A stretch of DNA of 30,756 nucleotides from Cyanophora paradoxa CCMP329 (Eukaryota; Plantae; Glaucophyta): contig QPMI01000037.1 of assembly GCA_004431415.1 (NCBI GenBank), forward strand, positions 1 to 30,756. The letters run 5' to 3'. The notes beneath the pieces are model-generated. The model was not told where the DNA came from. It saw only the letters and a program-made list of their open reading frames with translations, and did no database searches. This document shows positions 1 through 20,073 of the stretch, piece after piece (the stretch's first letter is position 1; each line of letters starts with the position of its first letter). The translations under genes and the position numbers were made by a program.

Positions 1-3000
1 AATAGCCTCATCATCCGCGGGGTGCATGTCTGTGCAGATCCGAGAGATCATCATCAGTGCGGGAATGACTGCACAGATCTAGAGCCGGTGCACCGTCTGC
101 ACCGCCTTCGGGGATTGCCAGATTTAATGTCAGTGAAGACAGCTTCGAGAACCTCGCAATGGCGGACTCGAGCGCTCCCAAGCGCTCGACCATTGCACGC
201 TTCACAACGTGAAGTCTCACACTCACATCTCGCAAGCTTGTCGACTGGAATGCCGCCAGGTCGGCAGACTCCAGTTTGTCACTGCTCAGCTGCGTACGCA
301 GTTAGGGAGTTAGTGACGAGAGCATAACTTAGCTCATATGGACGCGCACGTCGATACATATTTCCTCGAGGAAAGGAAATTTCGCGATGGAGTGTAGACC
401 AGTGTTGTTGAGCGGAAAGAAAATTTACTGCGTCGAGGAATCGGCCGACCTGGGCTTTTTGGCAAACCGCACGCAGTTGCCAGAGCACTCCACGGGATCA
501 GGATCGAGGACAATTGATCGCAGCGACTTTCCAGGGCCAGCAGCTAGAGTCGAGAAGGGTCGCCGATCTCTGAAGGTCCGTGGGGAATCTTTCAGGGTGA
601 ACAGTTGATGACAACGTCACGCAGAGCTGATAAGGTCGGAGGACTGCAAGCACGCTGCAGTCGTTTGCCGAGAAGTGGATAGACTGAAGGTTGGGAGGGC
701 TGGCTGCGATCGCTGCTGCTGCTGTGCTGTCCAGGGGAAACGCGTTCGGCATCAGCTTGAGGGACGAATACTGCTCAACGACTCAAGGACGCTTGCAAGT
801 CCTCAGCGGTTGCCTTTTGCCTCTGGTCAATACGTAGGTTGACAAGGTCGCCCTTAGGGAGTATCCGAAAGAACTCGTACTCCAGCGTCTCTAGGCGAAT
901 GGCAAGCTTCTCCAGAGCGCTGCGCGCCGCACGCTGCGGCCGGAGAGCTGCGAGGGTTGCCAGGATGAAAGCATGCACGACGCTGTCGAGGCTGTTGATG
1001 TGTTCTGCCAAGAAGCACACGTCTGCCTCTGCACCTTGCCGTCCTTGTTTGCAGGCGCAGCACGGCAGAGCCAATGCCAAAGCCGAAATTGCTCTCGCTC
1101 TGCGCATGCATTCCAACGGTGACCCGCGTATGGCGCGCAAGCGAGCTTGATTTCTCGCTCCGGAGCAGCGACACGAGATGCTGAAACACGAATCCTCATT
1201 CGACCGCAGCTCGATACAGTCCCACGCTGTGCCTCGATACGCTCCTCAACGCCTGCGTGGCAGCGCGGGTTGGATCGGAGGTCCAAGTCGACTCGGCAGC
1301 GAGCCTGGGACGCACTACACATTCTCGAAGCGGCCAGGCTTGCACAGCGAGATGACTTGAAAACACTGCCAGGACGCGTCGGGCAGGTCGGAGATGGAAC
1401 GAAGCACCGCGCCAGATTCACTGGCGCTTCTGCACGGGCTCGCTTCGCTGAGCGTTCCGCCATCGCTCGCGTGCTGCGAGCTGGCGTGGCTGAGAGCCGT
1501 GTACCTCCTTCGTTGCAACTACGCTCAGCGGTAGCTCGTGCGGTAGCGCGGTAGCGCGGTAGCGCAGCATTGCAACCGGCGATGGATTGCGCGGCGAACG
1601 CCGCGCGAGACGCGCACGACTGAAACGCGCGCGTGTGAACGAGGAGAGAGCGATCCTGAACATGCGACTAATAGGGCTGCAGCGTTACAAGGTGCGTACT
1701 CTCACATCTTGTGTTGCTTGGTTGCGAGCTTGGTTGCGCAGCTGCAGACACCAGGAGCAGACTTGCAGCTGGCGTCCGCTGCAGAGCGGAGGTCCTTCAG
1801 CTTCATGATCAGCGGCTGCTGCAGTGGGCAGAGCAGCCGGTTGCACAAGACACGGCAGCCGCTTCAAACTTGCTCCAAGCTGCGGGCGCGGAGCCAGCGA
1901 CAGAGAGGTGCCAGCGCTTGCGAACACCCCTTTCGGGCAAGCTGGCGCTGATGCTGAGCGATGCATCAGCGCAAACGTGATCATGAGCAGGAGCATGCGC
2001 ATGCAGAGCAGCAACCGCCCCTTCGACCAGATGCCGGATAGCTCCTCGTTCGCATCTTAGAGCTCGTCTACGATGATCTCTCGAGCGTGCAAACCAGTCT
2101 TCAGCATCAACAAACGCTTCACGCAGCTTCTCAAAGATAAGAACTGGCCTGTGTCCGGCTGAACGGTTCCGATCTTGTGGAAATGGGCCCGCAGCCAACG
2201 AGCTCCTCAGCGCAGTCAGAGCTCTGTTCAGAGAAAAGAAACTCGCGGGCTGCGAGAACGTCATCGTCAGCTCATTTTGGCATGACCGGTCGAGCAGTTC
2301 CCGACATGCTCTACTCGCACCGAACAGAGAGGAAATTTGCATTCAAGCTATGCTTCATATTCTGAGGTCAATATTTGGTGCGCGAATTTGCACAGACATC
2401 GCGACAATGCATCAATTCCACTTCAAAAACCGGTGTTCTAACTGGCCTCGAGCTCAGATGTGATCGAGGACGTGGCAAAGGCGAAGCTTCTGCGGAATTC
2501 TGTGCATGTCATTTTCGAGGGCTGGGACTACTGGGAGAAATGTGAACACGTGTTGTATGACGAAGTCAGCGAACAATTTGTCAGCACTCTAGATGTCGCA
2601 CGCGCATTCACGAAGGCGCTGCGGAACTATCCAGAAGGCGGTATCAGTGACCGCATACGAACGCTTTGCCGCCATCTTTCTCCGTGCAGCCGCTGAGGTC
2701 AATTTGAAAGGGCTCCGCGAGTTGTCATGGTACGATGCGAGCATGCGGGCCAGAGGACATTGATTAACACCGCCTTTCCTGTCAGCTGATCAGGCGGTAC
2801 GTATGCATCAGATGCACGTAATATCCATCAGCGCAGATAGTGTTTACTGACATCGATATCTACTGCAGGAGCGATAGTCAACTCTCCCCGCAACGCTTAT
2901 CATGCACAGTTCGGGAGGACACAGCGCTCTCGACGCTCAATCCGGAAAGTGTGCGAGCGTTGATAGTTGCGTATAAAAGCATGGGTCGACGGTCGAGCGT

Positions 3001-5239
3001 ATCAGCACAATGGCTAACCTCGAAAGTCTCGAGATTCAGGTGCGATTCGCATTGTTGTTCGGTGTTCGAGTTGCTTACTTCGGCAACGTCAGATCGGCTG
3101 CGAGACCACTTCAAAATTTGCGACCGCTCCCGATGCTTAAAAATGTTAGAATCATATCGAAGTGCGTATCTGTGCATTCGTGCCGGCCATCGTTCACCAC
3201 AATTCAGCAGACGCGGAGTTATCCAGCAGAAGACGTGCACAGAGCAATCGGTGTATCTTTCGAAGAAATCGAGCGAACTTGGAGCAACTCCGGCGCTCGA
3301 ACATGTGATCTGCTTGTACGAGATCTAGGCACTCGCTACCATCAGAATGTAGAAGCCGAACACTTCACCAAGACAGTTTTATGGCCTCCTTCGGTCAATG
3401 CGAACGAAAGTTCGCCTGCTCAGCATCGAAGGCTTCTTTCCACATCCGGCAGAAATCTTGCGGGTTCGCTGTTTCACTCATTCAAATGCGATTCCGTGTT
3501 TCTGATCAATGAAAGAAGGCGCTGTTGGAGTCGGGTCCAAGACTGGCTCATGTTGAACTTAACATCGCTGTGCGTACCAGAGTTGGTCTGGAGGAGCTTA
3601 CGCAAGCCGTCAACATGCTCTGCGAACATCAAAATACGCTTTCTCGGCTTTATTGCTTTTGGAGAGTCGAAATACGAGCGGCACGTCATTCTGGCCAGGG
3701 GCAATTCATAGATACCACAAGGGTCTACGCGATTTTTATCCTCTAATTCAACTGCTTTCTCCACGATCAATAAAATGCAGCGAGGGAATTGGTGCAGTGT
3801 GCAGTATGTAAGATTATCGAGCTCGCTTGGCTAGCGCTACAATATGCCAAGTTACATACTCAGCTAGCTTTTGCTTGCTCGCAACAAATAATACAAAGAC
3901 AAAGTCGCATGTTCGCACATGGGATCTCTTCTTACTTCATTCCTGACTTCGCCCTCGGTCTTAAGCGACGATAGTGCTGACGTTGCAGACTTAAGATTGA
4001 CACATTCACGGTTTCGATTTCCCTCTCAAGATGGTTGAATTCGTCGAATTCCCTTTTGATCTGTCGTGCACGCACGTGAACTGACAGACGTCGGCATGAC
4101 TATATAATCACCAAATCTGTCTTTACCATTCGCTTTTGACAGCATTCGATCTCACAAATAACAGCATTCTTGAGGCTTTGAAATAGCTTTTCCAGTTGCT
4201 GAGAGTTTAACATGAGCACACACTCTTCGGAGGCGACCGGTTGGTTTATATCAGCGATCTCCTTTTCGATTACAGAACTGACCTGGAATTCGAGCATTTC
4301 AGAGAGTTGACCATCAGTGAGTGCGGGCCACGGCTCACATTAGCTGATAGCGCCATCACATCACTTCGAAGCTGCCGCATAATGTTCCGCTGGTTGTCGT
4401 GCTGTACATGCACTCGTTCGCACAGACGTCCGACGGTCAAGGAAAACTCATCACTACTATTTGATTCGCACCATCAACTTGTGAAATGTGAAGGGAAGCC
4501 GTACGTGAAATCAAGCGCGTGTTCAAACTGTTTCTAAAAGTGCGAGCGTTCAAACCGTGTTATGAAGAATACTTTTCGCCGAGTCGTAGATCTAGAGTGG
4601 AGTAGTGTTCGCACCAGGTGCTCACTGTTTAGCAAGCTTAAGGCCTTTTTTCGCTGGAGTTCCCTGTGCCCGAAGTTTGCCTTTTGCTCGCACGCTCGCC
4701 ATTGATCTCTCCCGCGCCCGCTTCACCGTCGTGCACTGCGCATGCGCATGCGTGGCCGGTTAGCTTAAGCCAGCAGCTTATCCGCTGGCCGCTGAGTGCG
4801 ACGCACCTTATCTTCAGAGCTTTGATTCGACTGCGATACCAGGCCGGCCATGGGTCTTCAAGCTGCGACATACTTAAAGCTTGTAATACGCGTTTCCGAG
4901 TAAAACGACGGCTTCCCGCGCAAATCCCGTAGCTCGTACCCTTCCCATTTAGAACCCTAACCGTATCCTTACCGTACCCTCTGAGAAATTTCAAACTTGC
5001 GATGCAGCGTAGACGAAGGAAACGCTCGTGCGTCGTATTAATATTGGCGTGGGTGCGTTTATCGTGCTTGATTGTTGTCCTCTGCGCGCGCAGGGACGAG
5101 AGTCTGGATCTGGCCGCTGACTCTGGGAAGACACCAAAACGTGCTGGGCCGACAAATGCGCAGCTGCAGTGCGCATGCACGTTGACGCGCATTCGCGGAC
5201 CAAATCGGCTCACATAATGCAGGGAATCGGCTTGCAGTA

Positions 5240-5380
5240 TGGAGCCTGCGGGCGGGATTCGAACCTACACATGGATCTACTAAAGACGTCGCCACGGTAC
5301 CAGAAGTAGATGAGCGGTACGCATATTCATTCGGAGGCAAAGCAAGCGAAAGAACCCTCTCTAACATTCGCCGCACAGGC
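5240..5380 (-). ncRNA. tRNA-like element (~141 nt): tRNA pseudogene, tRNA with a long insert, or tRNA-derived RNA; anticodon not identifiable
   Basis: On the minus strand the 5' GCCTGTG pairs with 3' CGCAGGC, followed by T-CCA. The T-arm GTAGG-TTCGAAT-CCCGC contains a perfect B-box (GGTTCGAATCC). There is a degenerate A-box (GGCGAATGTTAG) and an internal 7-bp stem ATCTACT/AGTAGAT. No oligo-T terminator follows. Confidence 0.45.
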
Positions 5381-6187
5381 TCGAATCGACAAGAAAGGCA
5401 ACCATAACGATAAATGATCTTCCAGACGATGCCATCGCCATAATTGCCAGCATGGTTCTAATGAACGCTCGAGTCCGTGCGAGCTCTGTGGAGTAGCAGC
5501 CGGCGCTTCTACAGGATTCTCGTGGAACAGGGCAATGGCTTGAAGCGCGTCCGCACCGCGACCATCTTTCTTGACACAATTCCGGCTCTCCTGCTTGAAA
5601 GGGTGTGGATTCGCGCGAAGTGGATCCTAGAGCATGGCGGTAGCATCAATTCGCTTCCTCCAGCTTTGCCTCGGAATTATGGAAGCAGCCAAAGACGTTT
5701 AAGAAACTTGCAATCTCCTGGACAGCATACAGCGTTTCTTTGAGAAGCCCAAGCGGTGCCTAGGAATCTGCACAGGGTGTGGTTCCGACGACCTTGAGGC
5801 CATTCATTTTGACTGGGTCACTTATCTTGAAGACGGCGCCTCGCCGTCTTATTCTGGACGACAAGGCAAGCGCAAGCCTTCGCGCACACCGTGAACGGAG
5901 GAAATAGCCAGCATCGAGCCGTATCGAACTCTGTTACCAACGCAGGTATTCGGGGGCCCGTTCAGTAAGTCCAAATTCGCTACGTATTCGTTTACGTAAT
6001 CCATTCAGAACCAGAAGCTGACAAACAGTTTTTTCATAATTTGCAGCTTTCGTGACTGCGGGCCTGATGACACGTCATTTGGGACGGTCGAAGAGCTATG
6101 TGTCGACCAAGAAACCATCATGTTTCAAGAAGCTGCGGGTTCCTTCTCCTACTGGGCTTTCAGTGCCAAGAAAGTCATCATCAAAGG

Positions 6188-7513
6188 ATGTCTAACAAGC
6201 GAAGGCCTAGAGCTGAAAACCCAGGACTCTTTCGTCCAGCGCCCGCGTCCATGATTTTCAATGTGCACGACCTGCCACTATTTATATTCGAGCAGCCTGA
6301 TTTGGATTGCAGATATCTGACGAGCCTCGGGACATCCAAAATGACTCGTCAATGGCCCACCGCGGCCGGCATCTCTGGTATTGCATCATACGGCGGGGAA
6401 TGCACGGAGGAGCTCCATGTCGAATTCACAGCAACTCGCATCCGCCCAGCTTCGCATCCAGTCGTCCAGTTCTTCTGCTCTCCCGACTCGTGCTGTCTCA
6501 AACATATTTCGTTCATCAATTGCATCATTAAGAGCGACAGCACGAATATAAATAAGATGGAACGGTATCTAAGCAATTTCACGCAAACGTTGCGCTTCAC
6601 GCTGGAGGACGGGCGTGATTACGAGCAAATCTTATCAGCAGCGCGGAAGTGTCAATCTCTTATCACGCTGGACCTGGTGGCATGCACAGTTCCACATGCA
6701 ACCGTGGCACAGCTCCGTAAATTATCACCGAATCGTCTCGCGGAACTCGCAAAGACATTACGATTCAGCAGCCTTCGCGAGCTGATCTTCCGCTTGCACC
6801 CTCTGACGCTCATGGAGCACAAGTCTTACGTGTCGAGCGCAACTGGCTGGTCACTCCATCACGAAGATCGCTTCGCAGTGCTCATCTCTGGAAACCTCCG
6901 CCTGGTTGGAGTGACTGGCTATGAACAGCGAACAGATGCAATGCGCGCAATCCCAGAATATGTTGCTCAGTGTGTGGTCGGGGCGTTCGAGAAGGCGCCA
7001 TCCTTAGAAAAGCTGCATCTTGTAGATATCTACTTGCGCAACGAAGTTGTCTTCGACCGGGCACTTGGAGAGAGAATAAGGTGTATTGTTAACCTCCTCG
7101 CACAGCTACATGAGCTTAATAAGAAGGTTCGTCTGCACCTCTCTTTCGCAGACGTTCTTTTTTGCAGTTTCCAGATTTGTGGTGCCATAAATGAGCTTCC
7201 TGCTGCGCAGATGGCACTCATGATTTCTGGTGCTCAAACCGATGTCAACTACGACGCAACGCGTGCCCTAGGAACACTCAACCAGCAATTGCAAGCGACG
7301 TCCTTCGACGTTCTTGAAACAGCGCTTGCGTCACTTCTCGATCATGTGCGCCAGAAGAACGCTCTGATCAAAGCACAGAGCGATAATGTCGACAATGAGA
7401 TCAAGACGATAAAAAATCGTATCTTAGAGATGCAGTCCTCTCGAAATGCATTATTATCGTGTAATCGATCATGCAATTGTCAATCATTTCAGCTAGACAG
7501 TCACTCGAAGTGA
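6188..7513 (+). CDS. Hypothetical protein with LRR/RNI-like LxxLxL motifs and a C-terminal coiled coil
   Basis: Longest ORF of the GC-rich half (471 aa from 6098; likely start MSNKRR at 6188). Motifs include LKHISFINC, LITLDLVAC, LRELIFRL and LEKLHLVDI. The tail (NALIKAQSDNVDNEIKTIKNRILEMQ) has a heptad-like pattern. Confidence 0.55.
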   Translation: MSNKRRPRAENPGLFRPAPASMIFNVHDLPLFIFEQPDLDCRYLTSLGTSKMTRQWPTAAGISGIASYGGECTEELHVEFTATRIRPASHPVVQFFCSPDSCCLKHISFINCIIKSDSTNINKMERYLSNFTQTLRFTLEDGRDYEQILSAARKCQSLITLDLVACTVPHATVAQLRKLSPNRLAELAKTLRFSSLRELIFRLHPLTLMEHKSYVSSATGWSLHHEDRFAVLISGNLRLVGVTGYEQRTDAMRAIPEYVAQCVVGAFEKAPSLEKLHLVDIYLRNEVVFDRALGERIRCIVNLLAQLHELNKKVRLHLSFADVLFCSFQICGAINELPAAQMALMISGAQTDVNYDATRALGTLNQQLQATSFDVLETALASLLDHVRQKNALIKAQSDNVDNEIKTIKNRILEMQSSRNALLSCNRSCNCQSFQLDSHSK

Positions 7514-7569
7514 ACAATTCATACATGAGAGCACGAACATGCAAACGCAATTCCAGCCACGGCCATGGG

Positions 7570-8203
7570 CTAGTCAAGCTCTATCACTGCGTCCGGATCC
7601 GCCAGGAAAGGTACATGCTCGACGGCCGGATCAACTGTATTCCTCGTAATGTAAAACAGATCATCCGGGGATGGCCCTGCGCCTTGACGCCTGTGCACGC
7701 GCACCCGTGAATTCGCGAGATCCGCAGCAGAAATCACCGTACGTATACGACGCAAAGATCGCTTGCACCAACGACTGGAAGGTTCGGCTTGCTGGGTCGT
7801 ACCAATGCACCGCCAGAGTGCCGCGGTCATCCACATGCGTACTGCAGTGCAGCTCCAAGAACGCCAGGTCCAGTAGCTCGCTCTTCCACGCATTCGAGTC
7901 CGAAGCACGGATCGTGACTCGCACAGGCCCTGCGCATGCGCTGTTGAGATCACGGCACACTAGCAGAAGCAACGATGCAACCGGGCATGCACCTGTCATT
8001 GAAGTGACGCGTAGCGGGGCAGGCCGGCAGTCGCCGAGAACGCGCACCTCGACAGTTTTAGAGCTGCCCTCGTTCTCGGGCACCTGCTTCTTTGACGGGT
8101 CGGGCTCCGGCTCTGACTTCCGCTTTCTTGAAGCTTTGGTAGGCATTTTCTTCTGAGGAATCGATCCGTTGTACTTTCGCGCCTTTTGTTTTGTCTTCGC
8201 CAT
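7570..8203 (-). CDS. Histone H3-tail-like fusion protein, paralog 1 (spliced)
   Basis: N-terminus MAKTKQKARKYNGSIPQKKMPTKASRK aligns to H3 [27 protein letters not shown]. It shares the family core (VEVRVLGDCRP...GPVRVTI...VEHVPFLA). A 33-nt GT-AG intron lies at 7960-7992, with a probable second intron and a small indel near 7670-7685. Confidence 0.7.
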
Positions 8204-8691
8204 TAGAGCGAGCGCGCCTCGAAACTTCCGAGAGTCGCTAGATCCTGTCGGAAAACTGGAAACTGGGGAGTCGCGCTCCTCGAGCTCGCGCCGCGCTGCC
8301 TTGTGCAGACGCTAGATTGCTGGATCTTGGTCTCGTCCGGGACGGCCCGGACGGCCCGGGATGGGACTAGTGGGGTACACGTGCGCTCAATGCCGCAGCA
8401 AGTCTCGAAGCTTTCAGGCGGTGACCGGTGGTCGGAGATCGAGCTAGAGCGCGTAAAACAGCTAGCCGGAGGCTTAGCCATCGCCGGCAGCCTCGCTGAC
8501 GTGGACTCGGGCGCCGCGTGGCCTGTCATGATCAACGGCGCTGAACGTTGAACGTTGATAGATATAGCCGTCGACTTCGGCATTCGTGAATGTGCACGCC
8601 CGCTTCGTGCTCTGCCTTTACAGTTCGCCGCTGGAACTCATGCGGCTTGTTCCCTGCAGGCCTAGGTCGTCCGTTCTCCGGATCCTCGCAG

Positions 8692-9464
8692 ATGGCCTCC
8701 GCGAAGGCAGCGAAGCGCCGGCGGGATATGCAATGTGATGATTCAGATCCGAAGCCCTCTCCTGTAGTTTTAAAGAAGCGCATACGGCGGCAAAGACAGC
8801 TGCAGTGTGGTGACCCAGAGCCCTCTTCTGAGTTGGAGGAGCTGGGCACAGTCAAGGCGCGGCGAAGATCGTTAGCGCAGATCTAGTTCGGCATCAGCTC
8901 AGCTTCAGCTGCAGCCGGGATTTGTGGCTGTCATCGAGCGCAATCGAGAGCGCGCTCGTTTGCATCCGCGGCGGCGGCCAAGGAGGCAGTCACACAGAAT
9001 TGGTTCATCGCACATCCGCTCGCCCTCCACGACGCTGAATCCTACATAGAAGCGTTACTCGAGCACTTGAATGGCACCAGCACACGCGCTCTCGTCCCCG
9101 TCAACAACCGACGACACTGGACACTCTTGGTTATCGACGGCAAGGTCTGCAGATACTACGACAGCATTGGCGCGAAGGCTCCGCGCAAGCTCGCAAGAAT
9201 TCTCTTGAAACATGAAATTGACGTCATCCAATCGGTACAGCGAGCAGTGCAGCATGACGGCCATCAGGTTAGTGCTGTTTTCACTCCCGCCCGTGGCCAG
9301 TGGCAACGGCTGACCACGCTCGCTAGTGCGGGATCTGGTTGCTGGACTTCGCAGAGCGCGAAATGCGAGGCAACCCTCTAGATCTAGATTTAGATGGAGA
9401 CTACATAGAGCGCCGTAGGAGAGAATTTGAGGCGCTCGTGTTGCACTACAGCGCTGGCAATTAG
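8692..9464 (+). CDS. Ulp1/SENP-family (peptidase C48-like) cysteine protease, spliced; 5' structure uncertain
   Basis: Ordered motifs WLSSSAIES, LVPVNNRRHWTLLVID and YYDS are present. Removing a 59-nt intron (9268-9326, GTTAGT...CTGAC...CTAG) gives QHDGHQ|CGIWLL, completing the His-Asp-Cys triad and oxyanion Gln. Stop TAG at 9462-9464. One or two indels lie upstream, and there may be a further exon near 8390-8550. Confidence 0.75.
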
Positions 9465-9562
9465 GCGCTCCTGTTGTATCCGTGCCGCCGCGTATACGTA
9501 TAATACATCCGCGTATTTTTGGCTACGAAATCCGGACTAGGGAAGGATGCCGGCACTTGCAA

Positions 9563-10193
9563 CTATTCCTGATTGATCGCCAGGAAAGGTACATGCTCGA
9601 CTTCCGGGATGATATCCCTCCTCGCGACGTAATACAGATCTCCCGGGATGGCCCGGACTCGACGCCTGTGCACGCGCACCCGTGAATTCGCGAGATCCGC
9701 ATCAGAAATCACCGTAAGACGCAACAATCGCTTGCACCGGAAGCTCGAAGTACCAGCCTGCTTGGTCGTACCGAGATCGATACAGCACCAGCTCCTCGAG
9801 GTGCACATGCGTACTGCAGTGCAGCTCCTCGAACGCCAGGTCCAGTAGCTCGCTCTTCCACGCATTCGAGTCCGAAGCACGGATCGTGACTCGCACAGGC
9901 CCTGCGCATGCGCTGTTGAGTTCACGGCACACTGGCAGAGCAACGGTGAATCGGTGTACATTTGCACCTGTCATTGCAGTGACGCGTAGCGGGGCAGGCC
10001 GGCAGTCGCCGAGAATGTGTACGTCAACAAAGCTGCCTTCGTTCTCGGGCCGCGGTCGTGGCGCGTAAAGAGCATTCAGTGCTTCCGACTCCGCGACCTG
10101 CTCCGCTGTCGGCGGCCGCGGCCGCTGTGCGAGGTTCTTTCGAGGAGCTTTTCCGCCTGTAGACATACGCGCTCTCTCTTTCACTTTCGCCAT
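9563..10193 (-). CDS. Histone H3-tail-like fusion protein, paralog 2 (carries an H3 K9M-equivalent)
   Basis: ATG at 10193 gives [22 protein letters not shown], where STGGKAPRK is identical to H3 residues 10-18 in exact register. A 36-nt GT-AG intron lies at 9932-9967. The C-terminal exon reads DLYYVARRDIIPEVEHVPFLAINQE*. Confidence 0.7.
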
Positions 10194-10515
10194 CCAGCAG
10201 CTTCGAGTTGTGGCAGCACTGCACGCCAAGCCGGCTTTTTTTGCCGGCGCGGTAAGTTCGGCACTCCCCCCCTTCTCTTCCCCCCCTCCTTCCTCTATGA
10301 CCGTGGCCTGAGTATGCACTGTGTGGAAGCTTCCCGATTAAATCGTATTTGAACAGCAGGTTCAGTGCAATACTGAAATTCAATTGTGATTTAAACGAAG
10401 ATCACACGTCTAAATATTGAGCACGCCTTCGAACAGGCGCTGGAATTCAGCATCCTCCAGGTCGTCGATTTTTGCTGATCACAATATCAGCATCGGAGTA
10501 AATAAAAATGCATCC

Positions 10516-10728
10516 GAGGGGAACCGCCATACCTCGCAGTGTCGCAATTTCAGCTGACATTTACAAAGAATCGCGAACGAGGTGTAAACATAAATGTACC
10601 GCGACGTTCATAAAATCATCGGGAGGAAAACCGCCGTACCACGAAGCGTCGTGACTTCATCTAAGATACCCATACTCAAGGCCGGAAATTGAATGTACCG
10701 CGAAGGAGTGAGATAGCGTACCACGAAG
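10516..10728. repeat. Degenerate ~100-107 bp repeats
   Basis: GAGG-(G/A)2-AACCGCC(A/G)TACC..CG at 10516 and 10623; AATGTACCGCGA at 10593 and 10692; CGTACCACGAAG again at ~10717. Confidence 0.5.
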
Positions 10729-10931
10729 AGCTTTCTTCTGAGATTGGAGACCCGCATTCATAGCTGCAGTCATTATCAGTCACTCAGAAATCCCAATTCC
10801 GAGAAAACGGCGAAGTGGAAACCGGTCAGCCGCTGCAGTTGCGCTTGGGGAGCTGCATTCACAGCTACACGCACGGGAAACGGTCAAATCGAGACCTAAA
10901 TCGAAAAGCAGTCTAAAAAAACACCATTGGT

Positions 10932-11582
10932 CCGCTGCAGCTGGGCGACCAGGGAAGCATTCTCATTCTGGATGCCTGCAGACGTTTCAAACGAAGAATG
11001 AAAGAAGGCGCCCCCGAGCAATTTGACCTTTCAGCCACTGCAGTTGGGCGACCAGGGAAGCATTCTCATTCTGGACGCCTGCAGACGTTTCAAGAGGAGA
11101 CTGGAAGAAGGCGCCCCTGAGCGATTCGACCTTGCAGCCGCTGCAGTTGGGCGAGCAGGGAAGCATTCTCATTCTGGATGCCTGCAGACGTTTCGAACGA
11201 AGAATGAAAGAAGGCGCCCCTGAGCGATTTGACCTTGCAGCCGTTGCAGCTGGGCGAGCAGGGAAGCATTCTCATTCTGGACGCCTGCAGACGTTTCAAA
11301 AGAAGAATGAACGAAGGCGCCCCTGAGCGATTTGACCTTGCAGCCGTTGCAGCTGGGCGAGCAGGGAAGCATTTTCATGCTGGACGCCTGCAGACGTTTC
11401 AAAAGAAGAATGAACGAAGGCGCCCCTGAGCGATTCGACCTTGCAGCCGTTGCAGCTGGGCGAGCAGGGAAGCATTCTCATTCTGGAGGCCTGCAGACGT
11501 TTCAAAAGAAGAATGAACGAAGGCGCCCCTGAGCGATTCGACCTTGCAGCCGCTGCAGCTGGGCGACCAGGAAAGCGTTTTC
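10932..11582. repeat. 103-bp tandem repeat array, 6 full units plus a partial unit
   Basis: Unit starts at 10932, 11035, 11138, 11241, 11344, 11447 and 11550 (partial). Units are near-identical. The period is not a multiple of 3. Confidence 0.95.
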
Positions 11583-12118
11583 CTTGCAGCCGCTGCAGTC
11601 GGGGCTGCAGCGGGGGATTACGCGCGGATACTAATTAACTGAAAGCAGTTATAGCTGAACGCAAAAAAGGCATTTACCGTCGACGCGCTCTTTCGCTTGT
11701 CGAAGTAAGGCGTTATCATCCTGAAGTGATTTCACCTGCTGCTGCAAGCATCGAATCTCCTCCGGATCCCGAAGTTCGGCATTCTGAGAACCGGTACCTG
11801 CGAGCCGGAATTCAACTTATCCGAGGGATAGATAGACTGTCTTTCATCGTGTCACCAGTGTGTTTGTGACAGCCTCCATAGGTTGAAGACCATTCCGACT
11901 GGAGATTTGAGGCACCTTGCGCTGGGACGAATGAAATGGGAGGAAAGGTTTGTTCGAAGCATCCTTTTCTTTTTGCATCGAAGGTGTCAGTGTCGGAGCG
12001 GATGCATCTTTTCCACCGTCGACGCATTCAGACTTGCTCAGCTCCAGAGCAACACGTGCATCCTGCGATTATAATTAACAGCAGAACAGCCGGTTGAAAA
12101 AGCAGAAGTAAAGCAAGC

Positions 12119-12823
12119 TCACCTCTTTATCACAGACGTCGAGGACAAACCTCCTGCTCGTCTCCGGATACTAAACGATAGCGGAAGTTTGCGAGAGCGA
12201 TAGATAGTGATAGCGAAAACTTTGCAGAAGTCAGCTTCAACCCCACCCTTTTTAAAATGACTTTGATAATCCGATGCCTGTTTCCAATTCCCGAAAAGCG
12301 AAGGCCAGCCTCGTCTCGTCCACTTCGGCGCTGTCCAGCCAGTCCCGAAGAATCTGAAATCCTCAGGTTTCTCGAACGCCTTACGCAAAAATTCCGTAGA
12401 AAGATCCTGGATTCCGGATTTGAGACCTTTTTGTCTTCTGTCTTTCTGCAAGGTTCCGTCCAGCTTCGCTGCGGTGGCTAGGTCGTCGATTTCGATCGCC
12501 CGAAGTGACGGCCACTGGATATCAAGAGTTTTACGAATCCTTTCGACGTGCTCCGTGCTGTTACTCCACACCCCGCAGTAGACGATGCTTGGATCAAACA
12601 GAGGCACCAAAGTTGCTCTGTGGTTGTCCGATGCGAGGAAGGTACTGTCAATGCATATCCGGAAATTGGGTGACGCGATTCCAAGGAACGATATTCCCTG
12701 CTCCTTCGGCGAACCGAAAAGCCACTTCGGACGAATGAAGAGCGGAGTGTTCTTCGAATCCAAAAGGAGGGCTCTGAACGTGTTCTCAACCTGTTGCACA
12801 CTCAGCTGCAAGTCCACGTGCAT
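12119..12823 (-). CDS. Putative DEDD/WRN-exo-like 3'-5' exonuclease domain protein (divergent, partial; upstream part probably extends to ~13200)
   Basis: ISFLGIASP, LFDPSIVYCGV, IEIDDLA and GIQDLSTEFLRKAFEKP...W follow the order and spacing of WRN/Mut-7-type exonuclease motifs (LLQLA; L.DP.I.KVGV; DL; SL..L....L...L.K; W). The ExoI and ExoIII acidic residues are not clearly seen. Confidence 0.4.
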   Translation of the reverse strand: MHVDLQLSVQQVENTFRALLLDSKNTPLFIRPKWLFGSPKEQGISFLGIASPNFRICIDSTFLASDNHRATLVPLFDPSIVYCGVWSNSTEHVERIRKTLDIQWPSLRAIEIDDLATAAKLDGTLQKDRRQKGLKSGIQDLSTEFLRKAFEKPEDFRFFGTGWTAPKWTRRGWPSLFGNWKQASDYQSHFKKGGVEADFCKVFAITIYRSRKLPLSFSIRRRAGGLSSTSVIKR

Positions 12824-12959
12824 TCACACAGCACAGGCACGGGCGCACATCTGCAAGTGCGTGGGCTCGAGTGAACAGCCTTTGCGTGTGCATTACTGCG
12901 GGAGCTTCTCGCTTCTCCCAAGTACCCGCTTGAGCTCGGAGTTGCAAGAGGTTTCGGCC

Positions 12960-13183
12960 GAGGTTTCGACCTGCGTGTGCCGCGCTGCGTTCAAATGGTT
13001 GATTCCACGGATCTGCAGGTTTGCCTACCTCTACTTGTGAGAACCGGAGCTTTAAACCCGAGGTGCTCCGCTGCAGGGCGCTCCGGACGAGGTTTTGACC
13101 TGCGTATGCGGCAGTGCGTTCAAATGGTTGATTCCACGGTTCGGGCGGGTTTGCATACCTCTAAATTTGCGTACTGGAGCTTT
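12960..13183. repeat. Imperfect direct repeat, ~94-bp core with 129-bp period
   Basis: GAGGTTT(C/T)GACCTGCGT...TGCGTTCAAATGGTTGATTCCACGG...GGAGCTTT at 12960-13053 and 13089-13183. The minus strand reads PWNQPFER in both copies. Confidence 0.85.
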
Positions 13184-13407
13184 CCTCGCGTCTTCGCTCC
13201 AAGTGTCCCCGGCGACTTTGCCCCGGCGACTTTGCCCGGGGGAACTACTTTGCCGGGGGGTACCCGTCCGACCACTGCACCAGCAAGGCTCCAAAAGCGG
13301 CACCCAGCAGATTGAGTAGATCGAGTCTGGCGCTCATGATTTCATGCCTGCGCATGCCTGCGCGCAGTAGATCACGGTGCGCCTGCGCATTCCTGCGGAT
13401 TTCGAAC

Positions 13408-14039
13408 ATGCAGCGCGGCGACGAAGCAGCAGCAAGCAGCAAGCAGCTCGCTTCCAAAGCTTCACGGAAGTCAGCAGCGACAGAGTCCCGACAGCCGACA
13501 GCAGAGCAGATCGCAGAGTCGGAAGCGCTGATTGCTCTATTCACGCCGCGACCGCGGCTCGAGAACGAGGGCAGCTCTATCGAGGTTCGCGTTCTCGGTG
13601 ACTGCCGGCCTTCCCCGCTACGCGTCACTTCAATGACAGGTCCAACCCGGTTGCATCTTCGCCTCGCAACAGCCCTAATCGCAACAGCGCAGGGCCTGTG
13701 CGAGTCACGATAGATATTTCAAACTTTCGAATGTCGTGGCAGAGAGTTCTTCGGGCCCGTGCGTACATGGACCTGAACTGTCATGCGTACGTAATCGATT
13801 TCCGCACTTTGGATCTGTATCGGTATGACCCAGCTAGCCGGTGCTTCGAGCCGCTGGTGCAAGCGATCTTTGCTTCTTACCTCGATTTCTGATCCGGTAT
13901 TCGCGAATTCACGCGAACATGTGCACAGGCGTCGAGTCCGCTGGGGCCATTCGCGGATGACCTGGTCTACGTGGCGAGGAATTCGGTAATACCGGATGTC
14001 GAGCACGCGCCCTTCCTGGCGACCGTTTCCGGATCCTAG
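13408..14039 (+). CDS. Histone H3-tail-like fusion protein, paralog 3 (spliced)
   Basis: KQLASKASRKSAAT matches H3 residues 18-29 (KQLA(T/S)KAARKSA). It has the shared core and an intron donor after ATGACAG. A 72-nt GTGCAA...GCACAG segment lies at 13857-13928. The gene ends VEHAPFLATVSGS*. Confidence 0.65.
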
Positions 14040-14192
14040 CCAGTGCCAAGGCCCCTAGCGGCCCGACAGCTGCATCTTATTGGAATTCATGGCCGCCGAC
14101 GCCATGCACGATATTTGAACAGGGAATGCTGTACTTCGTTTTGTCAATTCGAATTTTCGTCGCGATTTAATGTATCGGCATTGATTTCGCGA

Positions 14193-14265
14193 AGGTCGCG
14201 AAGCGCTTCATCCACGGACGGATGAAGAGGATCGCGAACGCGGAAACCACCATCACAGAGCTGAA
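14193..14265 (+). repeat. 73-bp duplicate of 15503-15575
   Basis: AGGTCGCGAAGCGCTTCATCC...CACAGAGCTGAA occurs at both sites with one mismatch. Confidence 0.9.
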
Positions 14266-14366
14266 TCGCGAACGAAGTCACGGTCAGTATGCCCAGGGGT
14301 AATCCCACCGGGGGGTAAACATTAAGGCATTGGGGTTAACGTTGCGGCCGCGCATCTCTAGAAGCA

Positions 14367-15006
14367 ATGTCAAGCAAAGCTCCCCGCAAAGTTCTCGGCA
14401 CTAGACCCAGACCAAAGAAAGCACCGCCTACTTCACGATTCGTACCCGATCCAGAGCCAACAGCGGAGCAGGTCGCAGAGTCGGAAGCGCTGATTGCTCT
14501 ATACACGCCGCGACGTTTACCGCGGCTCGAGAACGAGCTCGAGGGCAGCTCTGTCGAGGTGCGCGTTCTCGGGACTGCCGCCCTTCTCGGCCACGCGTCA
14601 CTGAAATGACAGGTGCACATGTGTCCGGTTCATCGTTGCTCTGCCAGTGCGCCCTAATTGCAACCGCGCAGGGCCTGTGCGAATCAAGCTGTATGTTTCA
14701 AAGACGTGGGAGAAAGATCTTCTGGCCCAAGCGTACCGGGAATTGCGCTGCACACCGGTGCCCATTGATCGCCGCGAGCTGTCGCTCTATCGGTACGACC
14801 CAGCTAGCCGGTGCTTCGAGCCGCTGGTGCAAGCGATCTTTGCTTCTTACCTCGATTTCTGATGCGGCATTCCCGAATTCACGCGTGCATGTGCACAGGC
14901 GTCGAGTCCAGGGCCATCCCCGGATGACCTGTTCTACGTGGCAATGAAGGAAATCATCCCGGAAGTCGAGCATGCACCCTTCCTGGCAACCGTTACAGGA
15001 TCCTAG
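14367..15006 (+). CDS. Histone H3-tail-like fusion protein, paralog 4 (truncated tail; spliced)
   Basis: MSSKAPRKVLGT resembles H3 KAPRKQLAT. One G is missing in a G-run at ~14571. A 35-nt intron at 14613-14647 restores the frame (MT|VRPNCNRAGPVRIKL). A 72-nt segment lies at 14827-14898. The gene ends VEHAPFLATVTGS*. Confidence 0.65.
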
Positions 15007-15360
15007 CCAGTGTCAAGGCCCTAGCGGTCCGACAGCTGCATCTTATTCGAATTGCACGCCGGCGCCATGCACGCTAGCGGTGGCCGCCGGCGCCATGCAA
15101 GCTAGCCGAACAGAGATTCTTGTGCACAGAGATTGGTAGCAGTATTGTCTTCTCGAATTCGAATTCAGAGCGCCTTGGGCATGGCTGCCGCGGCCGCGAT
15201 CGCATAAATCGAAGAGTTGGAATTCTCCAGAGAACTATGTATGCGAAAACCATCGAAGAGTTAAAGTTTCCGAATACAATTACGTGCCCCCCCTGCCCGG
15301 CCCCGTTGAGGTTGGTTCCGAGGTTGAGGTGCTCAAGCTTCAGCTGCAGTATACTATTGC

Positions 15361-15780
15361 GTGCTTGTTCAAAGTACATGCAAGATGTCAAAAGTCATGC
15401 AAAATGTGCTTGCGTGCTTGTTCAGTGGCCTGCTTTTCTTTCAGGCGCTTGGAAATGTCCCTAAAGAACTCGAGGTCGCTGTTGCTGAGGCAGAGTCCGC
15501 AGAGGTCGCGAAGCGCTTCATCCACGGACGGATGAAGAGGATCGCAAACGCGGAAACCACCATCACAGAGCTGAAACATGCGCAGCGGGCTCTTCACCAC
15601 TTGAAAACCTTCGAGGGTGACCATACAGATGTCCTCCCAGAGTCCCCCTGTGCTCATGATCACTGGCTCTGTGAAAGCAAAATTTCTCGGGGTAAATTAA
15701 AACAGAAGGCCATGCGCACTGTTCAGGTCCAGATTCCCCTCCCCTCCGACGGCAGAGATTCAATCAGGGTGGTGCAGTAA
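15361..15780 (+). CDS. Hypothetical protein (probable terminal exon beginning after TTTCAG at ~15445)
   Basis: Open frame with helical composition (ELEVAVAEAESAEVAKRF) after a pyrimidine-rich acceptor-like site. No family recognised. Confidence 0.25.
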   Translation: MLVQSTCKMSKVMQNVLACLFSGLLFFQALGNVPKELEVAVAEAESAEVAKRFIHGRMKRIANAETTITELKHAQRALHHLKTFEGDHTDVLPESPCAHDHWLCESKISRGKLKQKAMRTVQVQIPLPSDGRDSIRVVQ

Positions 15781-16170
15781 TTCGTGTCCTCACCTTCTCC
15801 TTCGCGATCGCTGTCCTCGCCCGACTGGGGAGGATGTCGAAGGCCCGCGACTGCCGGTGGAGCTTGGCAATCCGAAGCGCCAAATTAGCGAAGGGCCGAA
15901 CGTCCATAGGGAGTTCGTGCAAAGTGCTGGCACTTTCGATACCCAGGATGATGGCGCATATGCACAGTGGGGATGATGGGTTCTCGACACAGGTACGACA
16001 CGGAACCTCCTTTGGCCGCTCTTCCACTTCTTCGTCGTCGCTGAGAGCTCTTGCGTCGTTCTTGGCGGCTGCAGCCCGCTCCTCAGCCTTCCGCAGACGT
16101 CGATGAATCTCCGCCACCGCTTCCGCTGACGCTTGCTTCTCGAGCTGCCGCCGCGACGCCTCATCTCGCG
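15764..16170 (-). pseudogene. 5'-truncated coding sequence interrupted at the AT-rich junction
   Basis: A coiled-coil-like, then Cys-containing, open frame (SRDEASRRQLEKQ...CRTC...CIC) runs right up to 16170. Its only start codon is supplied by the inverted repeat. Confidence 0.45.
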
Positions 16171-16454
16171 ACACATAGTAAAATGCGGAGTTTTAACCCT
16201 CGGCTTAATCTTAATTGATTTTGTTGATATATCTCGTATATTCTATTTCAATCAATCGATAATCTGTGTATATCTTATCGAATATTCAATTATTTCGATT
16301 ATTTTGTATTCTTTTCGATATTTTATCGTAAATTTCTCTTATTTTCCGATTAGTCTTACTGAGTTAATCGATAATCTGTATATATTTCCGAATAATATAA
16401 CTGAATCTCAATTAGATCTTGCCTCTGGTTAAAACTCCGCATTTTACTATGTGT
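16171..16454. repeat. 284-bp module bounded by perfect 28-bp inverted repeats (MITE-like or viral terminus)
   Basis: ACACATAGTAAAATGCGGAGTTTTAACC at 16171-16198 and its exact reverse complement at 16427-16454. A 20-bp internal direct repeat (16254, 16366) has one mismatch. No target-site duplication. Confidence 0.9.
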
Positions 16455-16708
16455 GATTGGTCTAAAAGTTAATTGATTTAATCGATATTATATTCATGTA
16501 CTTTCTCGATTAAATTTAATTAAATTTAAATTCATTTAATCGGAAATATATCGCTTAACTCGATTAAGATCCATATTAGATTCATTTGTTTAATAAAACA
16601 AATAGATCTCTTATTGAATCCAATCGTAATTATACATGAAACTTATATGATTTTATCATTGTTTTATTGAGTCTAAGGGGGACCCTTAGGAATTTAATGA
16701 ATAATTGG

Positions 16709-16799
16709 GTGTCACAGGTGTCACAGGTCCATCCCATCGAAAGGGAAAATCACTCTTTATAGGGCTTGAGCTGGGATAAACCTGTGACACCTGTGACAC
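16709..16799. promoter_or_regulatory. Inverted pair of doubled 9-mers; putative replication origin or protein-binding site
   Basis: GTGTCACAGGTGTCACAGGT (16709-16728) and its perfect reverse complement (16780-16799) flank a 51-bp spacer. The structure is seen directly; the function is inferred. Confidence 0.6.
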
Positions 16800-17300
16800 A
16801 TACCATATTCAGTAAGGACCTCTTATATTGTGAAAATCTCAGTGTTAGTTGGTGTAGTTGATTCAAAAAATGCATTTTATACTCTGATTCATTGTTATTT
16901 CCTGTGAAATTTGAGTCAACTCAACCCACTTAGTCAACCCTTGCATTGAATTCGTAACAAAATCCATATACTATTACTACTTTTACGATTAATATGAGTC
17001 AACCTTGAGTCCACTTTAATATAAATATTATATAATAGGGGAGTGTTGAGTTTTAGTGTAAGGAAATCGAATAGTATTCGAAATACTTGACATTGCTTAA
17101 TGTAGGGTGCATTCATATTTTGGCTACATCATACAGTAGAATTTCTATCGTAAAGAATGACCGGAATCCGGAAAATAATCATTGTAAAAAGCTATTGTAG
17201 GTAAAGGATATATTATATCCTGTTGTAATAATAATAATAGCTGATCAATGTTATTGTTATAAAACAAAGGAATCCTTTCAAAACTCATTATAGAAACTCA

Positions 17301-17699
17301 TCAAAACGGGAATCTATCATGTTTATGTCTTTCAGTCTTCTCAAATGTGAGGAAATTCATTGTTTTATCGATCTCATCTGCTACTGCTTGTGTTTTATGC
17401 TGAGCTTCTTTACCACAACTGAATATATCAATTGCTAACATGCCTTCATTGGAATAACAATGAGCTGTACAATGGCTTTCATCTAATAGCAGAACCAATG
17501 CAAAACCAGGAGGTGATACTTTGCCATCAAATATTTCACAATGTTTATGAACAATCCTAATACCTTGTCTCAATATAGCTTGTTCAAGGGTTCCCATAAT
17601 CCAATTACCTAGGAAGCTAACATGCTCATGTCCTGTTGCAATAGCTGATTTAGCTTTGTAATCAAGCATAACATGAAAGCCTCTGTATTTAGTCTCCAT
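17301..17699 (-). CDS. speD: S-adenosylmethionine decarboxylase proenzyme (short, bacterial-type pyruvoyl enzyme)
   Basis: G.H...D N-terminal motif (GFHVMLD), F....G, LLLDESHCTAHCY with the E|S autocleavage site, and AIDIFSCG. 132 aa from the ATG at 17699. Confidence 0.88.
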   Translation of the reverse strand: METKYRGFHVMLDYKAKSAIATGHEHVSFLGNWIMGTLEQAILRQGIRIVHKHCEIFDGKVSPPGFALVLLLDESHCTAHCYSNEGMLAIDIFSCGKEAQHKTQAVADEIDKTMNFLTFEKTERHKHDRFPF

Positions 17700-17728
17700 T
17701 AAGAATACCTTAGAAAAATTAATTAAAC

Positions 17729-18001
17729 CTAATCGAACCGAATGCAAACATCCCTATATTCCACTGTGATTGATGAAGTAGCCCTTTTCCTATGTGCTTG
17801 ACTTTTTCTTTTATTACAGTCCCTACACCCTGATCCCTTCACATGATTAAAGGGATAGGTAAGGATCACTTTGTTACACTGCAAACATCTAACAGATACT
17901 TTCTCTTGAGCTTTGATGTAATGTGTCTCACTGTAATCGAATTTATCTTTACCATGGACTGTCATAGCAGCATCAATAAACTTTTTTGTTTTACTATCCA
18001 T
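17729..18001 (-). CDS. Small Zn-ribbon protein (DUF723 / homing-endonuclease-associated repeat type)
   Basis: FI..A..VHG..FDYS...Y.....KV...C..C......P.NH..G.GC..C pattern followed by a basic tail. No nuclease domain. Confidence 0.75.
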   Translation of the reverse strand: MDSKTKKFIDAAMTVHGKDKFDYSETHYIKAQEKVSVRCLQCNKVILTYPFNHVKGSGCRDCNKRKSQAHRKRATSSITVEYRDVCIRFD

Positions 18002-18023
18002 ATTCTATATATAACCAATATTC

Positions 18024-18857
18024 TTATGGAGCAGTATCCTGCCCGAAAATGGGGAAATATCGATTTGTCCCATAGTATTCAGCATAGGTATTTTGCTTTG
18101 CAATAAAATCGGTTCTCTCTGCAAACATCACACATTTGTAGATACCAAACTTGGTGGCTCTCACTAAGAACTGATAGTCTTCCAAACCGAAATTGACTCC
18201 ATGATAAGCAATTCCGAAATTATCATATGGGGTGATCACTACTGCAAAGTTGGGAGTTCCACCTTCAACTTGGCATACAGCATAAACATCTGGTGGGATA
18301 TCAACAACAACCTTATAGTGGTCACCAATCTCAACAAGAGAGTCAACAACTGCTGTTTGTTCATTCACAACAATGGGGAATATCTTGATTATATAGGGGG
18401 CATTCATGCTGGGGACATAGGTTCGAATTCTTGTGTTGGGATCAATGGGATTGGGTTGATCATTCACAAATAGAGGCGCTCCAACAGCCCCACCAACCCT
18501 AAGACCATCACCAATATAAGCTCCCCCCGATTTGCAGTTAATAGCTCCCGACCTAGATTCAAAAGAATAAGTAGAAAGAGGATCTCCATAGCTATCTGGG
18601 TCTCCATAATGAGCAGAAAAGTTTGCATTTGTGACAAGTAGCTTAGTTGTCTTAACTATTCCATTATTTTTATCACATCTGAGTTCCTGTAATCTCAGTT
18701 TATGGGTGGAACCAAAGGTGTTCATTGTAGGTTGGACCTCTGTGGATTGGAGACCTTCCACATCATCAAAGGTAGCATGTTGCAGAACATGGTTTGCTGG
18801 GGCTGCTAATGATAGTTGTGGGGTGATAATTCGTTCAAGTGGGGGTTGCTCAGCCAT
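18024..18857 (-). CDS. Putative virion fibre/spike protein, paralog A
   Basis: Intact 277-aa ORF. SGAINCKSGGAYIGDGLRVGG is a fibre-like Gly motif. The C-terminal beta domain (IPPDVY...VVITPY...F.V...AERTD) resembles phage fibre tip domains. Confidence 0.65.
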   Translation of the reverse strand: MAEQPPLERIITPQLSLAAPANHVLQHATFDDVEGLQSTEVQPTMNTFGSTHKLRLQELRCDKNNGIVKTTKLLVTNANFSAHYGDPDSYGDPLSTYSFESRSGAINCKSGGAYIGDGLRVGGAVGAPLFVNDQPNPIDPNTRIRTYVPSMNAPYIIKIFPIVVNEQTAVVDSLVEIGDHYKVVVDIPPDVYAVCQVEGGTPNFAVVITPYDNFGIAYHGVNFGLEDYQFLVRATKFGIYKCVMFAERTDFIAKQNTYAEYYGTNRYFPIFGQDTAP

Positions 18858-18880
18858 TTTACATTAAAGGGATATATCTT

Positions 18881-19726
18881 TTATGGGGTTGGGTCATCAA
18901 TAATATCTGGCTCCATGTAAAACCCTGTAACTGAAAGAGTATCAGGAGTTACACCTCTAAGAGCTGATACAGCGGCTATATCTGTTCTCAAACCGATAAG
19001 AGTTATAGTATATAACCCAATATCTGTAACAAACAAGTCAAAGGTGAAATTATTATTATAAACACAGTAGCCATAACCGAAATGATTATATCCCTGAACA
19101 TTGAAATAGTATTTATGACCTACTTGATTGTTGTTGGCTCTACAAAGGGAAAGCATTGCAGATGGAATCGCAAGACCTCTCAGTACTCTTTTGGTTCCTT
19201 CAATTAATTCCGAGTTTTCAAGAGTAACAGTATATCCAATGTAAAATTGAATTAATGGCTGCTGTGCAACAGGAGTATATAATCGAATTCGTTGGGGGTC
19301 TTCAACATTCTGTTCAAGAGTATCTGGGACATCATTATACGAAATTGAGGATGAAAGCTGACCTGAAACTCTGCAACCTCCACCAATAAAAGCTCCTCCT
19401 GATCTCACAGTAACAGCAGCAGAATTCTTATCGAAATCAAGGGCTTTCAGATCAACACTGTAAGCATCTGGACCTCCATTAGTAGGTTGGAAGAAGTTTG
19501 CATTTGTGACAAGAAGTCGAGTTGTTTTCACCACACCTGAATTCTTATCAGCTCTCAGCTCTTTAACTCGAATAATCGAATTTTTATCAAAGGAGTTACC
19601 ATTGGAGTTGGGTCTCTCTGTGGATTCTAAACCACGAACCTCATCATTTACTTCATGCTGGCGAAAATGCATTGCAGGGGATCCAAGGGAATATATAGGC
19701 AGTTGAACTCGATTATATTCACCCAT
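18881..19726 (-). CDS. Putative virion fibre/spike protein, paralog B
   Basis: Shares ELR.DKN.G.VKTT.LLVTNANF, SGGA.IG.G.RV.G, RIR.Y.P and RTD with 18024-18857. The ATG at 19726 is preceded by AGTAAAAG. Confidence 0.65.
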   Translation of the reverse strand: MGEYNRVQLPIYSLGSPAMHFRQHEVNDEVRGLESTERPNSNGNSFDKNSIIRVKELRADKNSGVVKTTRLLVTNANFFQPTNGGPDAYSVDLKALDFDKNSAAVTVRSGGAFIGGGCRVSGQLSSSISYNDVPDTLEQNVEDPQRIRLYTPVAQQPLIQFYIGYTVTLENSELIEGTKRVLRGLAIPSAMLSLCRANNNQVGHKYYFNVQGYNHFGYGYCVYNNNFTFDLFVTDIGLYTITLIGLRTDIAAVSALRGVTPDTLSVTGFYMEPDIIDDPTP

Positions 19727-19779
19727 TGCTTCTTTTACTAAGAAGTAAAGAAAAATAAACTGCAATCAAGCCAAAGTGA

Positions 19780-20070
19780 TTAAATTCGATCCAAGGATTG
19801 GTAGGCAACTGAAAGTGATTGAAGGTTGGATGTCATCGCTTTGAGGTTAGAATCACATTCACCATATTTTTTTACTGGGTCACCATGAGCCGATTGCGCA
19901 AGGACATTAACCAAGAGGTTTTTATACTCATTTACAACTGGTGAGAGCTTGTTAGTTTGCTGAATCGTTTTTTCAACTGTTTGTAATGCGTTTACAAGGG
20001 TGATTGTATCGAAAGAAAGCGCAACAGGCTCAGTTGAATAGGTGGTTCCACCAAGAGGATAGGTCGCCAT
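19780..20070 (-). CDS. Hypothetical 96-aa helical protein
   Basis: ATG-initiated ORF that fills the gap between co-oriented genes, 3 bp from the upstream stop. Confidence 0.6.
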   Translation of the reverse strand: MATYPLGGTTYSTEPVALSFDTITLVNALQTVEKTIQQTNKLSPVVNEYKNLLVNVLAQSAHGDPVKKYGECDSNLKAMTSNLQSLSVAYQSLDRI

Positions 20071-20073
20071 TTA

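Follow-up and report, generated by a model that had tools for sequence, protein, structure and literature searches.

A free peptide of the histone H3 tail in which Lys9 is replaced by methionine (K9M) inhibits Clr4 and binds G9a, with residues 3-12 ordered (PMC5030085). PAF15 carries ubiquitin at K15/K24, in the manner of H3 K18/K23, and recruits DNMT1 (PMC13752237). In plants, transposons are well known to carry the protease Ulp1 as cargo, in fusion with anti-silencing VANC genes (PMC13317346). Here we describe a family of four genes in the glaucophyte Cyanophora paradoxa in which an N-terminal stretch resembling the H3 tail precedes a domain that does not resemble a histone. The genes lie in the first half of a 30,756-nucleotide stretch of contig QPMI01000037.1, hereafter the window. 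An earlier note, made from the letters of the window, had proposed four such paralogs and interpreted them as decoys for proteins that read or write chromatin marks. All four are where it placed them, two on each strand, with 72-81% DNA identity over 490-640 nt, and the peptides it quoted are found in the sequence. The H3-tail fusion family is real, undescribed and lineage-restricted. It is not a histone variant and falls outside the known families of mimics.

The H3-like tails and their origin

The tails were scored against a reference string of H3 residues 1-40, of which residues 1-28 agree with PDB alignments, and each corresponds to a different part of H3 (Table 1). Copy 1 is identical to H3 at 15 of 27 positions with a one-residue gap; Lys4, Lys9, Lys18, Lys23 and Lys27 are kept while residues 10-21 are mostly lost. 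In copy 2, H3 residues 7-18 are unchanged (11 of 12) apart from K9M at 10164-10166, where the codon differs from the lysine codon of copy 1 by one base. The copy 3 stretch matches at 10 of 12 positions, or 11 of 12 if compared with the fungal-type Ser22.

Searching each tail alone against the 177,635 sequences of the PDB gives best E values of 1.2e-5 (copy 2), 0.007 (copy 1), 0.24 (copy 3) and 0.41 (copy 4), and for every tail only H3 or H3-tail constructs are among the matches listed. The core, searched separately, finds no relative. The earlier note had asked whether the similarity would exceed that of shuffled sequence, and it does, with P values of 5e-5 to 3.5e-4 against 20,000 shuffles. 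Furthermore, among 4369 stop-free segments of 30 residues, taken from all six frames of the window, the tails occupy ranks 1-4 with scores of 76, 66, 49 and 48; the next-best segment scores 35. These comparisons support the derivation of all four tails from H3, as had been claimed, with the caveat that copy 3 and copy 4, taken singly, match H3 weakly.

Was H3 sequence acquired once or repeatedly? Changes away from H3 are held in common, namely R2K with a basic residue at position 6 in copies 1 and 2, and A25S, using the same codon, in copies 1 and 3. Codons common to tails also occur at A1, A7, A15, L20 and A24. Because both codons and non-H3 changes are shared, the pattern points to one capture of approximately codons 1-30 of an H3 gene, eroded differently in each copy. 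Each copy holds a different H3 part, but the tails look like the product of a single capture rather than of four. With respect to the donor, the GC content at third codon positions (GC3) of the tails is 0.40-0.50, as against 67.6% GC for the C. paradoxa genome. This argues against recent copying from a typical GC-rich host H3 gene.

Gene structure, core domain and selection

All four paralogs have three exons and a predicted product of approximately 160-170 amino acids. Exon 1 ends in phase 1, intron 1 has the form GT..CAG, exon 2 comprises 51-54 codons, the second intron ends in CACAG and the last exon has about 35 codons. Every exon indel is a multiple of three. Intron 1 is real, since its lengths in copies 3 and 4 are not divisible by three and contigs built from sequencing reads confirm both. 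The donor of the second intron is placed with less certainty; a 72-nt version suits copies 3 and 4. In copy 1 a second intron at 7691-7768 puts exon 3 one base out of frame, and an alternative at 7677-7737 (61 nt) keeps the frame.

Table 1. Coordinates of the four paralogs, their H3-like stretches and the genes between them.
Feature	Position	Strand	Details
Copy 1	7570-8203	-	ATG 8203, stop 7570; exon 1 7993-8203
Copy 1 intron 1	7930-7992	-	63 nt; exon 2 starts 7929
Copy 1 H3-like tail	8123-8200	-	H3 1-27; R2K; middle eroded
Ulp1/SENP-like (C48) cysteine protease gene	8692-9464	+	Between copies 1 and 2; 5' exons uncertain
Copy 2	9563-10193	-	ATG 10193; exon 1 9968-10193; exon 2 9738-9901; exon 3 9563-9665
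Copy 2 intron 1	9902-9967	-	66 nt
Copy 2 intron 2	9666-9737	-	
Copy 2 H3-like tail	10128-10190	-	H3 1-21 in register; 14/21 identical
Unrelated multi-exon gene	10410-12900	-	Between copies 2 and 3; ends approximate
Copy 3	13408-14039	+	ATG 13408; intact; 168 aa if spliced as read; exons 13408-13639, 13693-13856, 13929-14039
Copy 3 intron 1	13640-13692	+	53 nt
Copy 3 intron 2	13857-13928	+	
Copy 3 H3-like stretch	13441-13476	+	H3 18-29; A25S; R26-K27-S28 kept
Copy 4	14367-15006	+	ATG 14367; 169 aa; exons 14367-14612, 14672-14826, 14899-15006
Copy 4 intron 1	14613-14671	+	59 nt
Copy 4 intron 2	14827-14898	+	
Copy 4 H3-like stretch	14376-14402	+	H3 14-22; 7/9 identical

The read contigs, which spanned copies 2-4 (9450-15200) with copy 1 outside the checked stretch, reveal single G or C bases missing from the assembly at runs at 11600, 13237, 14295, 14570, 15018 and 15176. 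Frameshifts on the contig are therefore no evidence for pseudogenes unless checked against reads. Copy 4 carries a frameshift at 14570 in the window; we assign this to assembly error because the read contigs contain one more G after 14570, as they do at several other G/C runs, and reject the classification of copy 4 as a pseudogene. In the window, exon 3 of copy 2 lacks two of the bases it would need to stay in frame. The read contig over that exon shows three gaps within 9450-9690, probably the same kind of error. With copy 4 corrected from the reads, the copy 2 gaps taken as assembly error and copy 1 spliced through the 61-nt intron, there is no loss of frame or splice site in any copy despite many indels. 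All four genes are thus intact or almost intact, and parts of them evolve under purifying selection.

The ratio of non-synonymous to synonymous substitution rates (dN/dS) of exon 3 is 0.22-0.31 in five of six pairs, at substantial synonymous divergence, and bears out the coding constraint first noticed in the last exon. Fisher tests for exon 3, made on three independent pairings, give P values of 4e-4, 2e-3 and 0.1. The value for the core part of exon 1 is 0.27-0.57. Both regions evolve under purifying selection. Exon 2 has dN/dS of 0.7-1.2, frame-keeping indels and a mosaic of identity, for example 136 nt at 97% between copies 1 and 2, a pattern that fits diversifying selection, relaxation or gene conversion. 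We note that the last 20 codons of exon 2 in copy 2 (9738-9800) differ from the other copies almost purely by non-synonymous changes, and are flanked by stretches 94-97% identical to copy 1.

For the tails, an initial test (synonymous differences, pS, 0.83; non-synonymous, pN, 0.24; P 3e-7) was overstated and has been replaced. It was inflated because the stretches were chosen by similarity, codons with multiple hits raise pS, and a shared Arg-Pro repeat is perhaps not homologous. In its place we estimated retention under neutrality. The 11 of 12 residues retained at H3 7-18 in copy 2, which include the non-basic S, T, G, G, A and P, have P values of 0.05-0.001 at 0.2-0.4 substitutions per site, the stretch having been picked post hoc. 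The corresponding values for 10 of 12 in copy 3, likewise picked post hoc, are 0.17-0.009. Selection acting on the H3 residues is suggestive only, judged from these sequence comparisons.

The shared core had been put at about 110 residues; it exists as described and measures some 110-135 residues across three exons. The spliced models were searched exon by exon. There is no Pfam family for the core and no match in a PDB profile search. The copy 2 open reading frame (ORF) and an exon 1 alignment gave no match among 5.8 billion proteins in a length-limited search that leaves longer or shorter kin uncovered, and viral contigs held no relative of the family. An exon 2 profile run against 1.84 billion representatives gave two short matches in several stretches; the one inspected was repetitive sequence and was rejected. 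A single metagenome locus that matched was also rejected, being a bacterial kinase with a beta-propeller. There was no match above 0.76 in the ESM Atlas, and no description of an H3-tail fusion family was found in the literature searched. The earlier suspicion that the family is not a described one is upheld for these databases and publications.

Fold prediction, made for exon 2 only, gives strand-helix-strand-strand-helix (beta-alpha-beta-beta-alpha) with a predicted local distance difference test score (pLDDT) of 79. On this topology a histone fold is excluded for the core, in agreement with the blank Pfam and PDB searches and with what had been proposed. The best structural matches to the exon 2 model are generic ferredoxin-like, ACT and HMA arrangements (Z no more than 7.3, under the level at which the tool is useful); no histone and no ubiquitin entry is among the matches to exon 2 alone. 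Added strands from exons 1 and 3 could extend this model to either a ferredoxin-like or a beta-grasp fold. None of the copies has a di-glycine C-terminus, the ends being ELD, NQE, SGS and TGS. For the unspliced core of copy 2, folding from the sequence alone gave an unusable model (pLDDT 38). The core is thus predicted to be an orphan alpha/beta domain with no histone fold.

Genomic setting, copy number and expression

Twenty sequencing runs of one organism (2012, 2019, 2024) contain 85-87% of the window's words. The published C. paradoxa assembly comprises 99.94 Mb in 712 contigs; its introns are short and its mean GC content is 67.6% (PMC6704402). Bases 1-16170 of the window are eukaryotic, with 53-56% GC and short spliceosomal introns; with C. 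paradoxa as host the cluster DNA is therefore well under the genome mean. A search of Rfam gave no match, and none of ten ORFs in the window is present in the exact-sequence collection.

Between copies 1 and 2 lies the Ulp1/SENP-like gene. Its His, Asp, Gln and Cys motifs can be read directly, with a 59-nt intron (9268-9326) just before the Cys; the Pfam Peptidase_C48 match (E 0.02) is under the cut-off. The plant Ulp1 cargo offers a parallel for this gene rather than a test of mobility. Just past its catalytic Asp, at 9147-9175, is a stretch like H3 14-21, scoring 35 against a background of 34 and probably due to chance. No family was found for the gene between copies 2 and 3. Within it, at 10829-11643, a 103-nt unit of exon plus intron is repeated about six times, each adding a 17-residue coiled-coil exon, and reads pile up four-fold deeper. 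Just upstream of copy 4, at 14183-14265, is an 83-nt piece of a neighbouring ORF (15493-15575), 94% identical, a sign of recent local rearrangement. Tail-to-tail with copy 1 is an intronless ORF of 471 residues (6098-7513), leucine-rich repeat-like in look, for which no homolog was found. An F-box-like start followed by an in-frame stop (5402-5500) is possibly a decayed F-box gene.

From 16171 the GC content falls to 39% and the DNA is virus-like. This block (16171-30756) is depleted in CpG (observed/expected 0.36) and has an inverted repeat of 41 nt at its start (16171-16211 / 16414-16454). Its coding content includes AdoMet decarboxylase, peptidase S74, tail-fibre-like repeats and patatin, and it interrupts an ORF for a coiled coil (15764-16170). 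For the ORF at 29573 the PDB gave no informative match.

A DNA run yields contigs of at least 2-3 further paralogs outside the window, at depth similar to that of the window copies and matching none of them. Read depth is 1500-2150, with no variant letters over contigs of 1-1.7 kb; such uniformity, judged from absolute depth, may reflect identical repeats of the whole cluster. In one of three RNA-like runs there is one contig of 235 nt (13257-13491, depth 2.3), which covers the 5' end of copy 3 including the tail and crosses no intron; the other two runs yield none.

That there is almost no RNA might indicate that repeated DNA carries the cluster as silent or decaying cargo, its conservation a consequence of youth, gene conversion or past function. 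The exon 2 dN/dS near 1 and the mosaic identity are in keeping with this, as are the stop-broken F-box-like start near 5402 and the virus insertion at 16171 in the same DNA. However, frames and splice sites are preserved in all copies despite many indels, and exon 3 dN/dS is about 0.25 at substantial synonymous divergence. We consider decay improbable.

Proposed function and comparison with known systems

Our preferred explanation is that the proteins act in the nucleus as decoys or adaptors bearing an H3 tail, a proposal held tentatively and at a little less than an even chance. Capture, duplication, intact frames and partial constraint are seen in the sequences, whereas nuclear location, binding, inhibition and mobility are what we infer. 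The 5' end of an H3 gene (some 30 codons) was joined, by the pattern of shared codons once, to a small orphan alpha/beta domain, and the fusion gene duplicated several times, each copy retaining a different tail part. The small nuclear products would be bound through their tails by H3 readers and writers outside the nucleosome, titrating or redirecting those enzymes. Copy 2 would jam H3K9 methyltransferases via K9M, copy 1 would present K4 and K9 at a free N-terminus, copy 3 would present K27-S28 and copy 4 K14 and K18, whilst the fast-changing exon 2 would determine partner or location. The cluster may ride on an amplified low-GC unit, a mobile element or duplicated segment, together with the Ulp1-like protease, and would serve to blunt host silencing of that unit. 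The K9M proposal draws on copy 2 retaining residues 4 and 7-12 of the enzyme-ordered 3-12, with Met at the target lysine; residues 3, 5 and 6 are changed.

Several observations weigh against decoys. K9M is a single base change in one paralog, with adjacent residues changed too. The exon 2 dN/dS is equally compatible with relaxed constraint; the retention test, applied post hoc, is non-significant at 0.1-0.2 substitutions per site; codons for the same tail residue differ at 6 of 17 positions (about a third), no more than in exon 3; and residues 11-21 of copy 1 have drifted neutrally (ratio 0.93). RNA for copy 3 amounts to the one unspliced contig, and copies 2 and 4 have none in three RNA-like runs. 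No transposase or element ends were found in 1-16170; the left end of an element may fall outside the window, and the right side is cut by the virus. Core PRC2 was not found in an older Cyanophora assembly (PMC5405695). The case for a decoy role is drawn from sequence.

Could the core do the work, with the captured H3 5' end providing a start codon and a basic signal for nuclear import or DNA binding that erodes wherever basic residues remain? Residues 1-28 of H3 act as a signal of this kind, in which Kap123 recognises K14 and K23, each set among small residues (PMC5677370). Each copy retains a basic cluster, a different one in each case, copy 1 has gained Arg/Lys, and no single H3 site is common to all four. 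Set against this, S10-T11-G12 and A7-R8 are preserved in copy 2, although the Kap123 consensus has no requirement for them. In addition, an 18-kDa protein is able to enter the nucleus without any signal. On balance we regard an import signal as somewhat unlikely, but as the chief alternative to decoys. The decoy interpretation of the earlier note is sustained with regard to H3 origin, non-histone core, coding constraint and novelty; the step from these to a decoy is interpretative, and an import signal would fit them too.

The tails might instead be positive adaptors of the PAF15 type, ubiquitylated or marked like H3 and attracting host machinery instead of obstructing it. Exon 1 of copy 2 has a weak match to the Pfam PAF entry, the PAF15 histone-like domain (E 0.19), a SUMO/ubiquitin-like protease gene adjoins, and the K15/K24 ubiquitylation with DNMT1 recruitment provides the parallel with H3 K18/K23 (PMC13752237). 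The Pfam match is, however, under the cut-off and accounted for by the H3 stretch, R2 is changed, K18 and K23 are both kept in copies 1 and 3 only, and there is no PAF15 core similarity. We give this alternative very little credence. The most elaborate form of the decoy proposal is a selfish amplified unit encoding mark-specialised H3-tail decoys (K4/K9, the K9M inhibitor, K14/K18 and K27-S28) and a SUMO-type protease as an anti-silencing kit, with K9M naturally selected. We judge it unlikely.

If functional, the family would give repeated DNA a new means of opposing chromatin silencing, or its host a new means of adjusting it, and this in an early-branching Archaeplastida lineage. If the tails only import, it is still a clear case of a gene family arising by histone-gene capture. 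The family works, if at all, like known histone mimics, and these provide the relevant comparisons. With histone H3 itself and the K9M oncohistone (PMC5030085) it shares a tail in register and, in copy 2, the A7-R8-M9-S10-T11-G12 stretch bound by G9a and Clr4; in contrast to H3 the genes are spliced, the tail is partial and eroded, and the lack of a histone fold means no incorporation into nucleosomes. EZHIP (PMC6513997; PMC12713659) is also a lineage-restricted, fast-evolving non-histone protein with a K-to-M-like H3 mimic. It is mammalian, with a short convergent motif directed against PRC2 (K27), whereas the present family has an H3-derived tail, K9M, a folded domain and multiple genes, inhibition here being putative. 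PAF15/PCLAF (Pfam PF15715; PMC13752237), similarly a non-histone protein with an H3-tail-like N-terminus, is a conserved single-copy PCNA partner, and no similarity extends beyond the tail.

Influenza NS1 (PMC12937675) also places H3-tail similarity on a non-histone carrier, and uses it against host chromatin. The NS1 motif is viral, convergent and four residues long; the family has 9-27 H3-captured residues across nuclear paralogs. The VANC/KAONASHI cargo of Mu-like transposons (PMC13317346) resembles the cluster in that sequence for the Ulp1 protease lies in repeated DNA next to putative anti-silencing genes, but VANC recognises DNA motifs and carries nothing of the H3 tail, and no Mutator transposase was found in 1-16170. 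Most histone mimics known so far consist of a short motif that arose by convergence in a single protein. In the present family a genuine H3 tail seems to have been acquired and its parts distributed over paralogs, one of which bears K9M, a change known as a dominant methyltransferase inhibitor.

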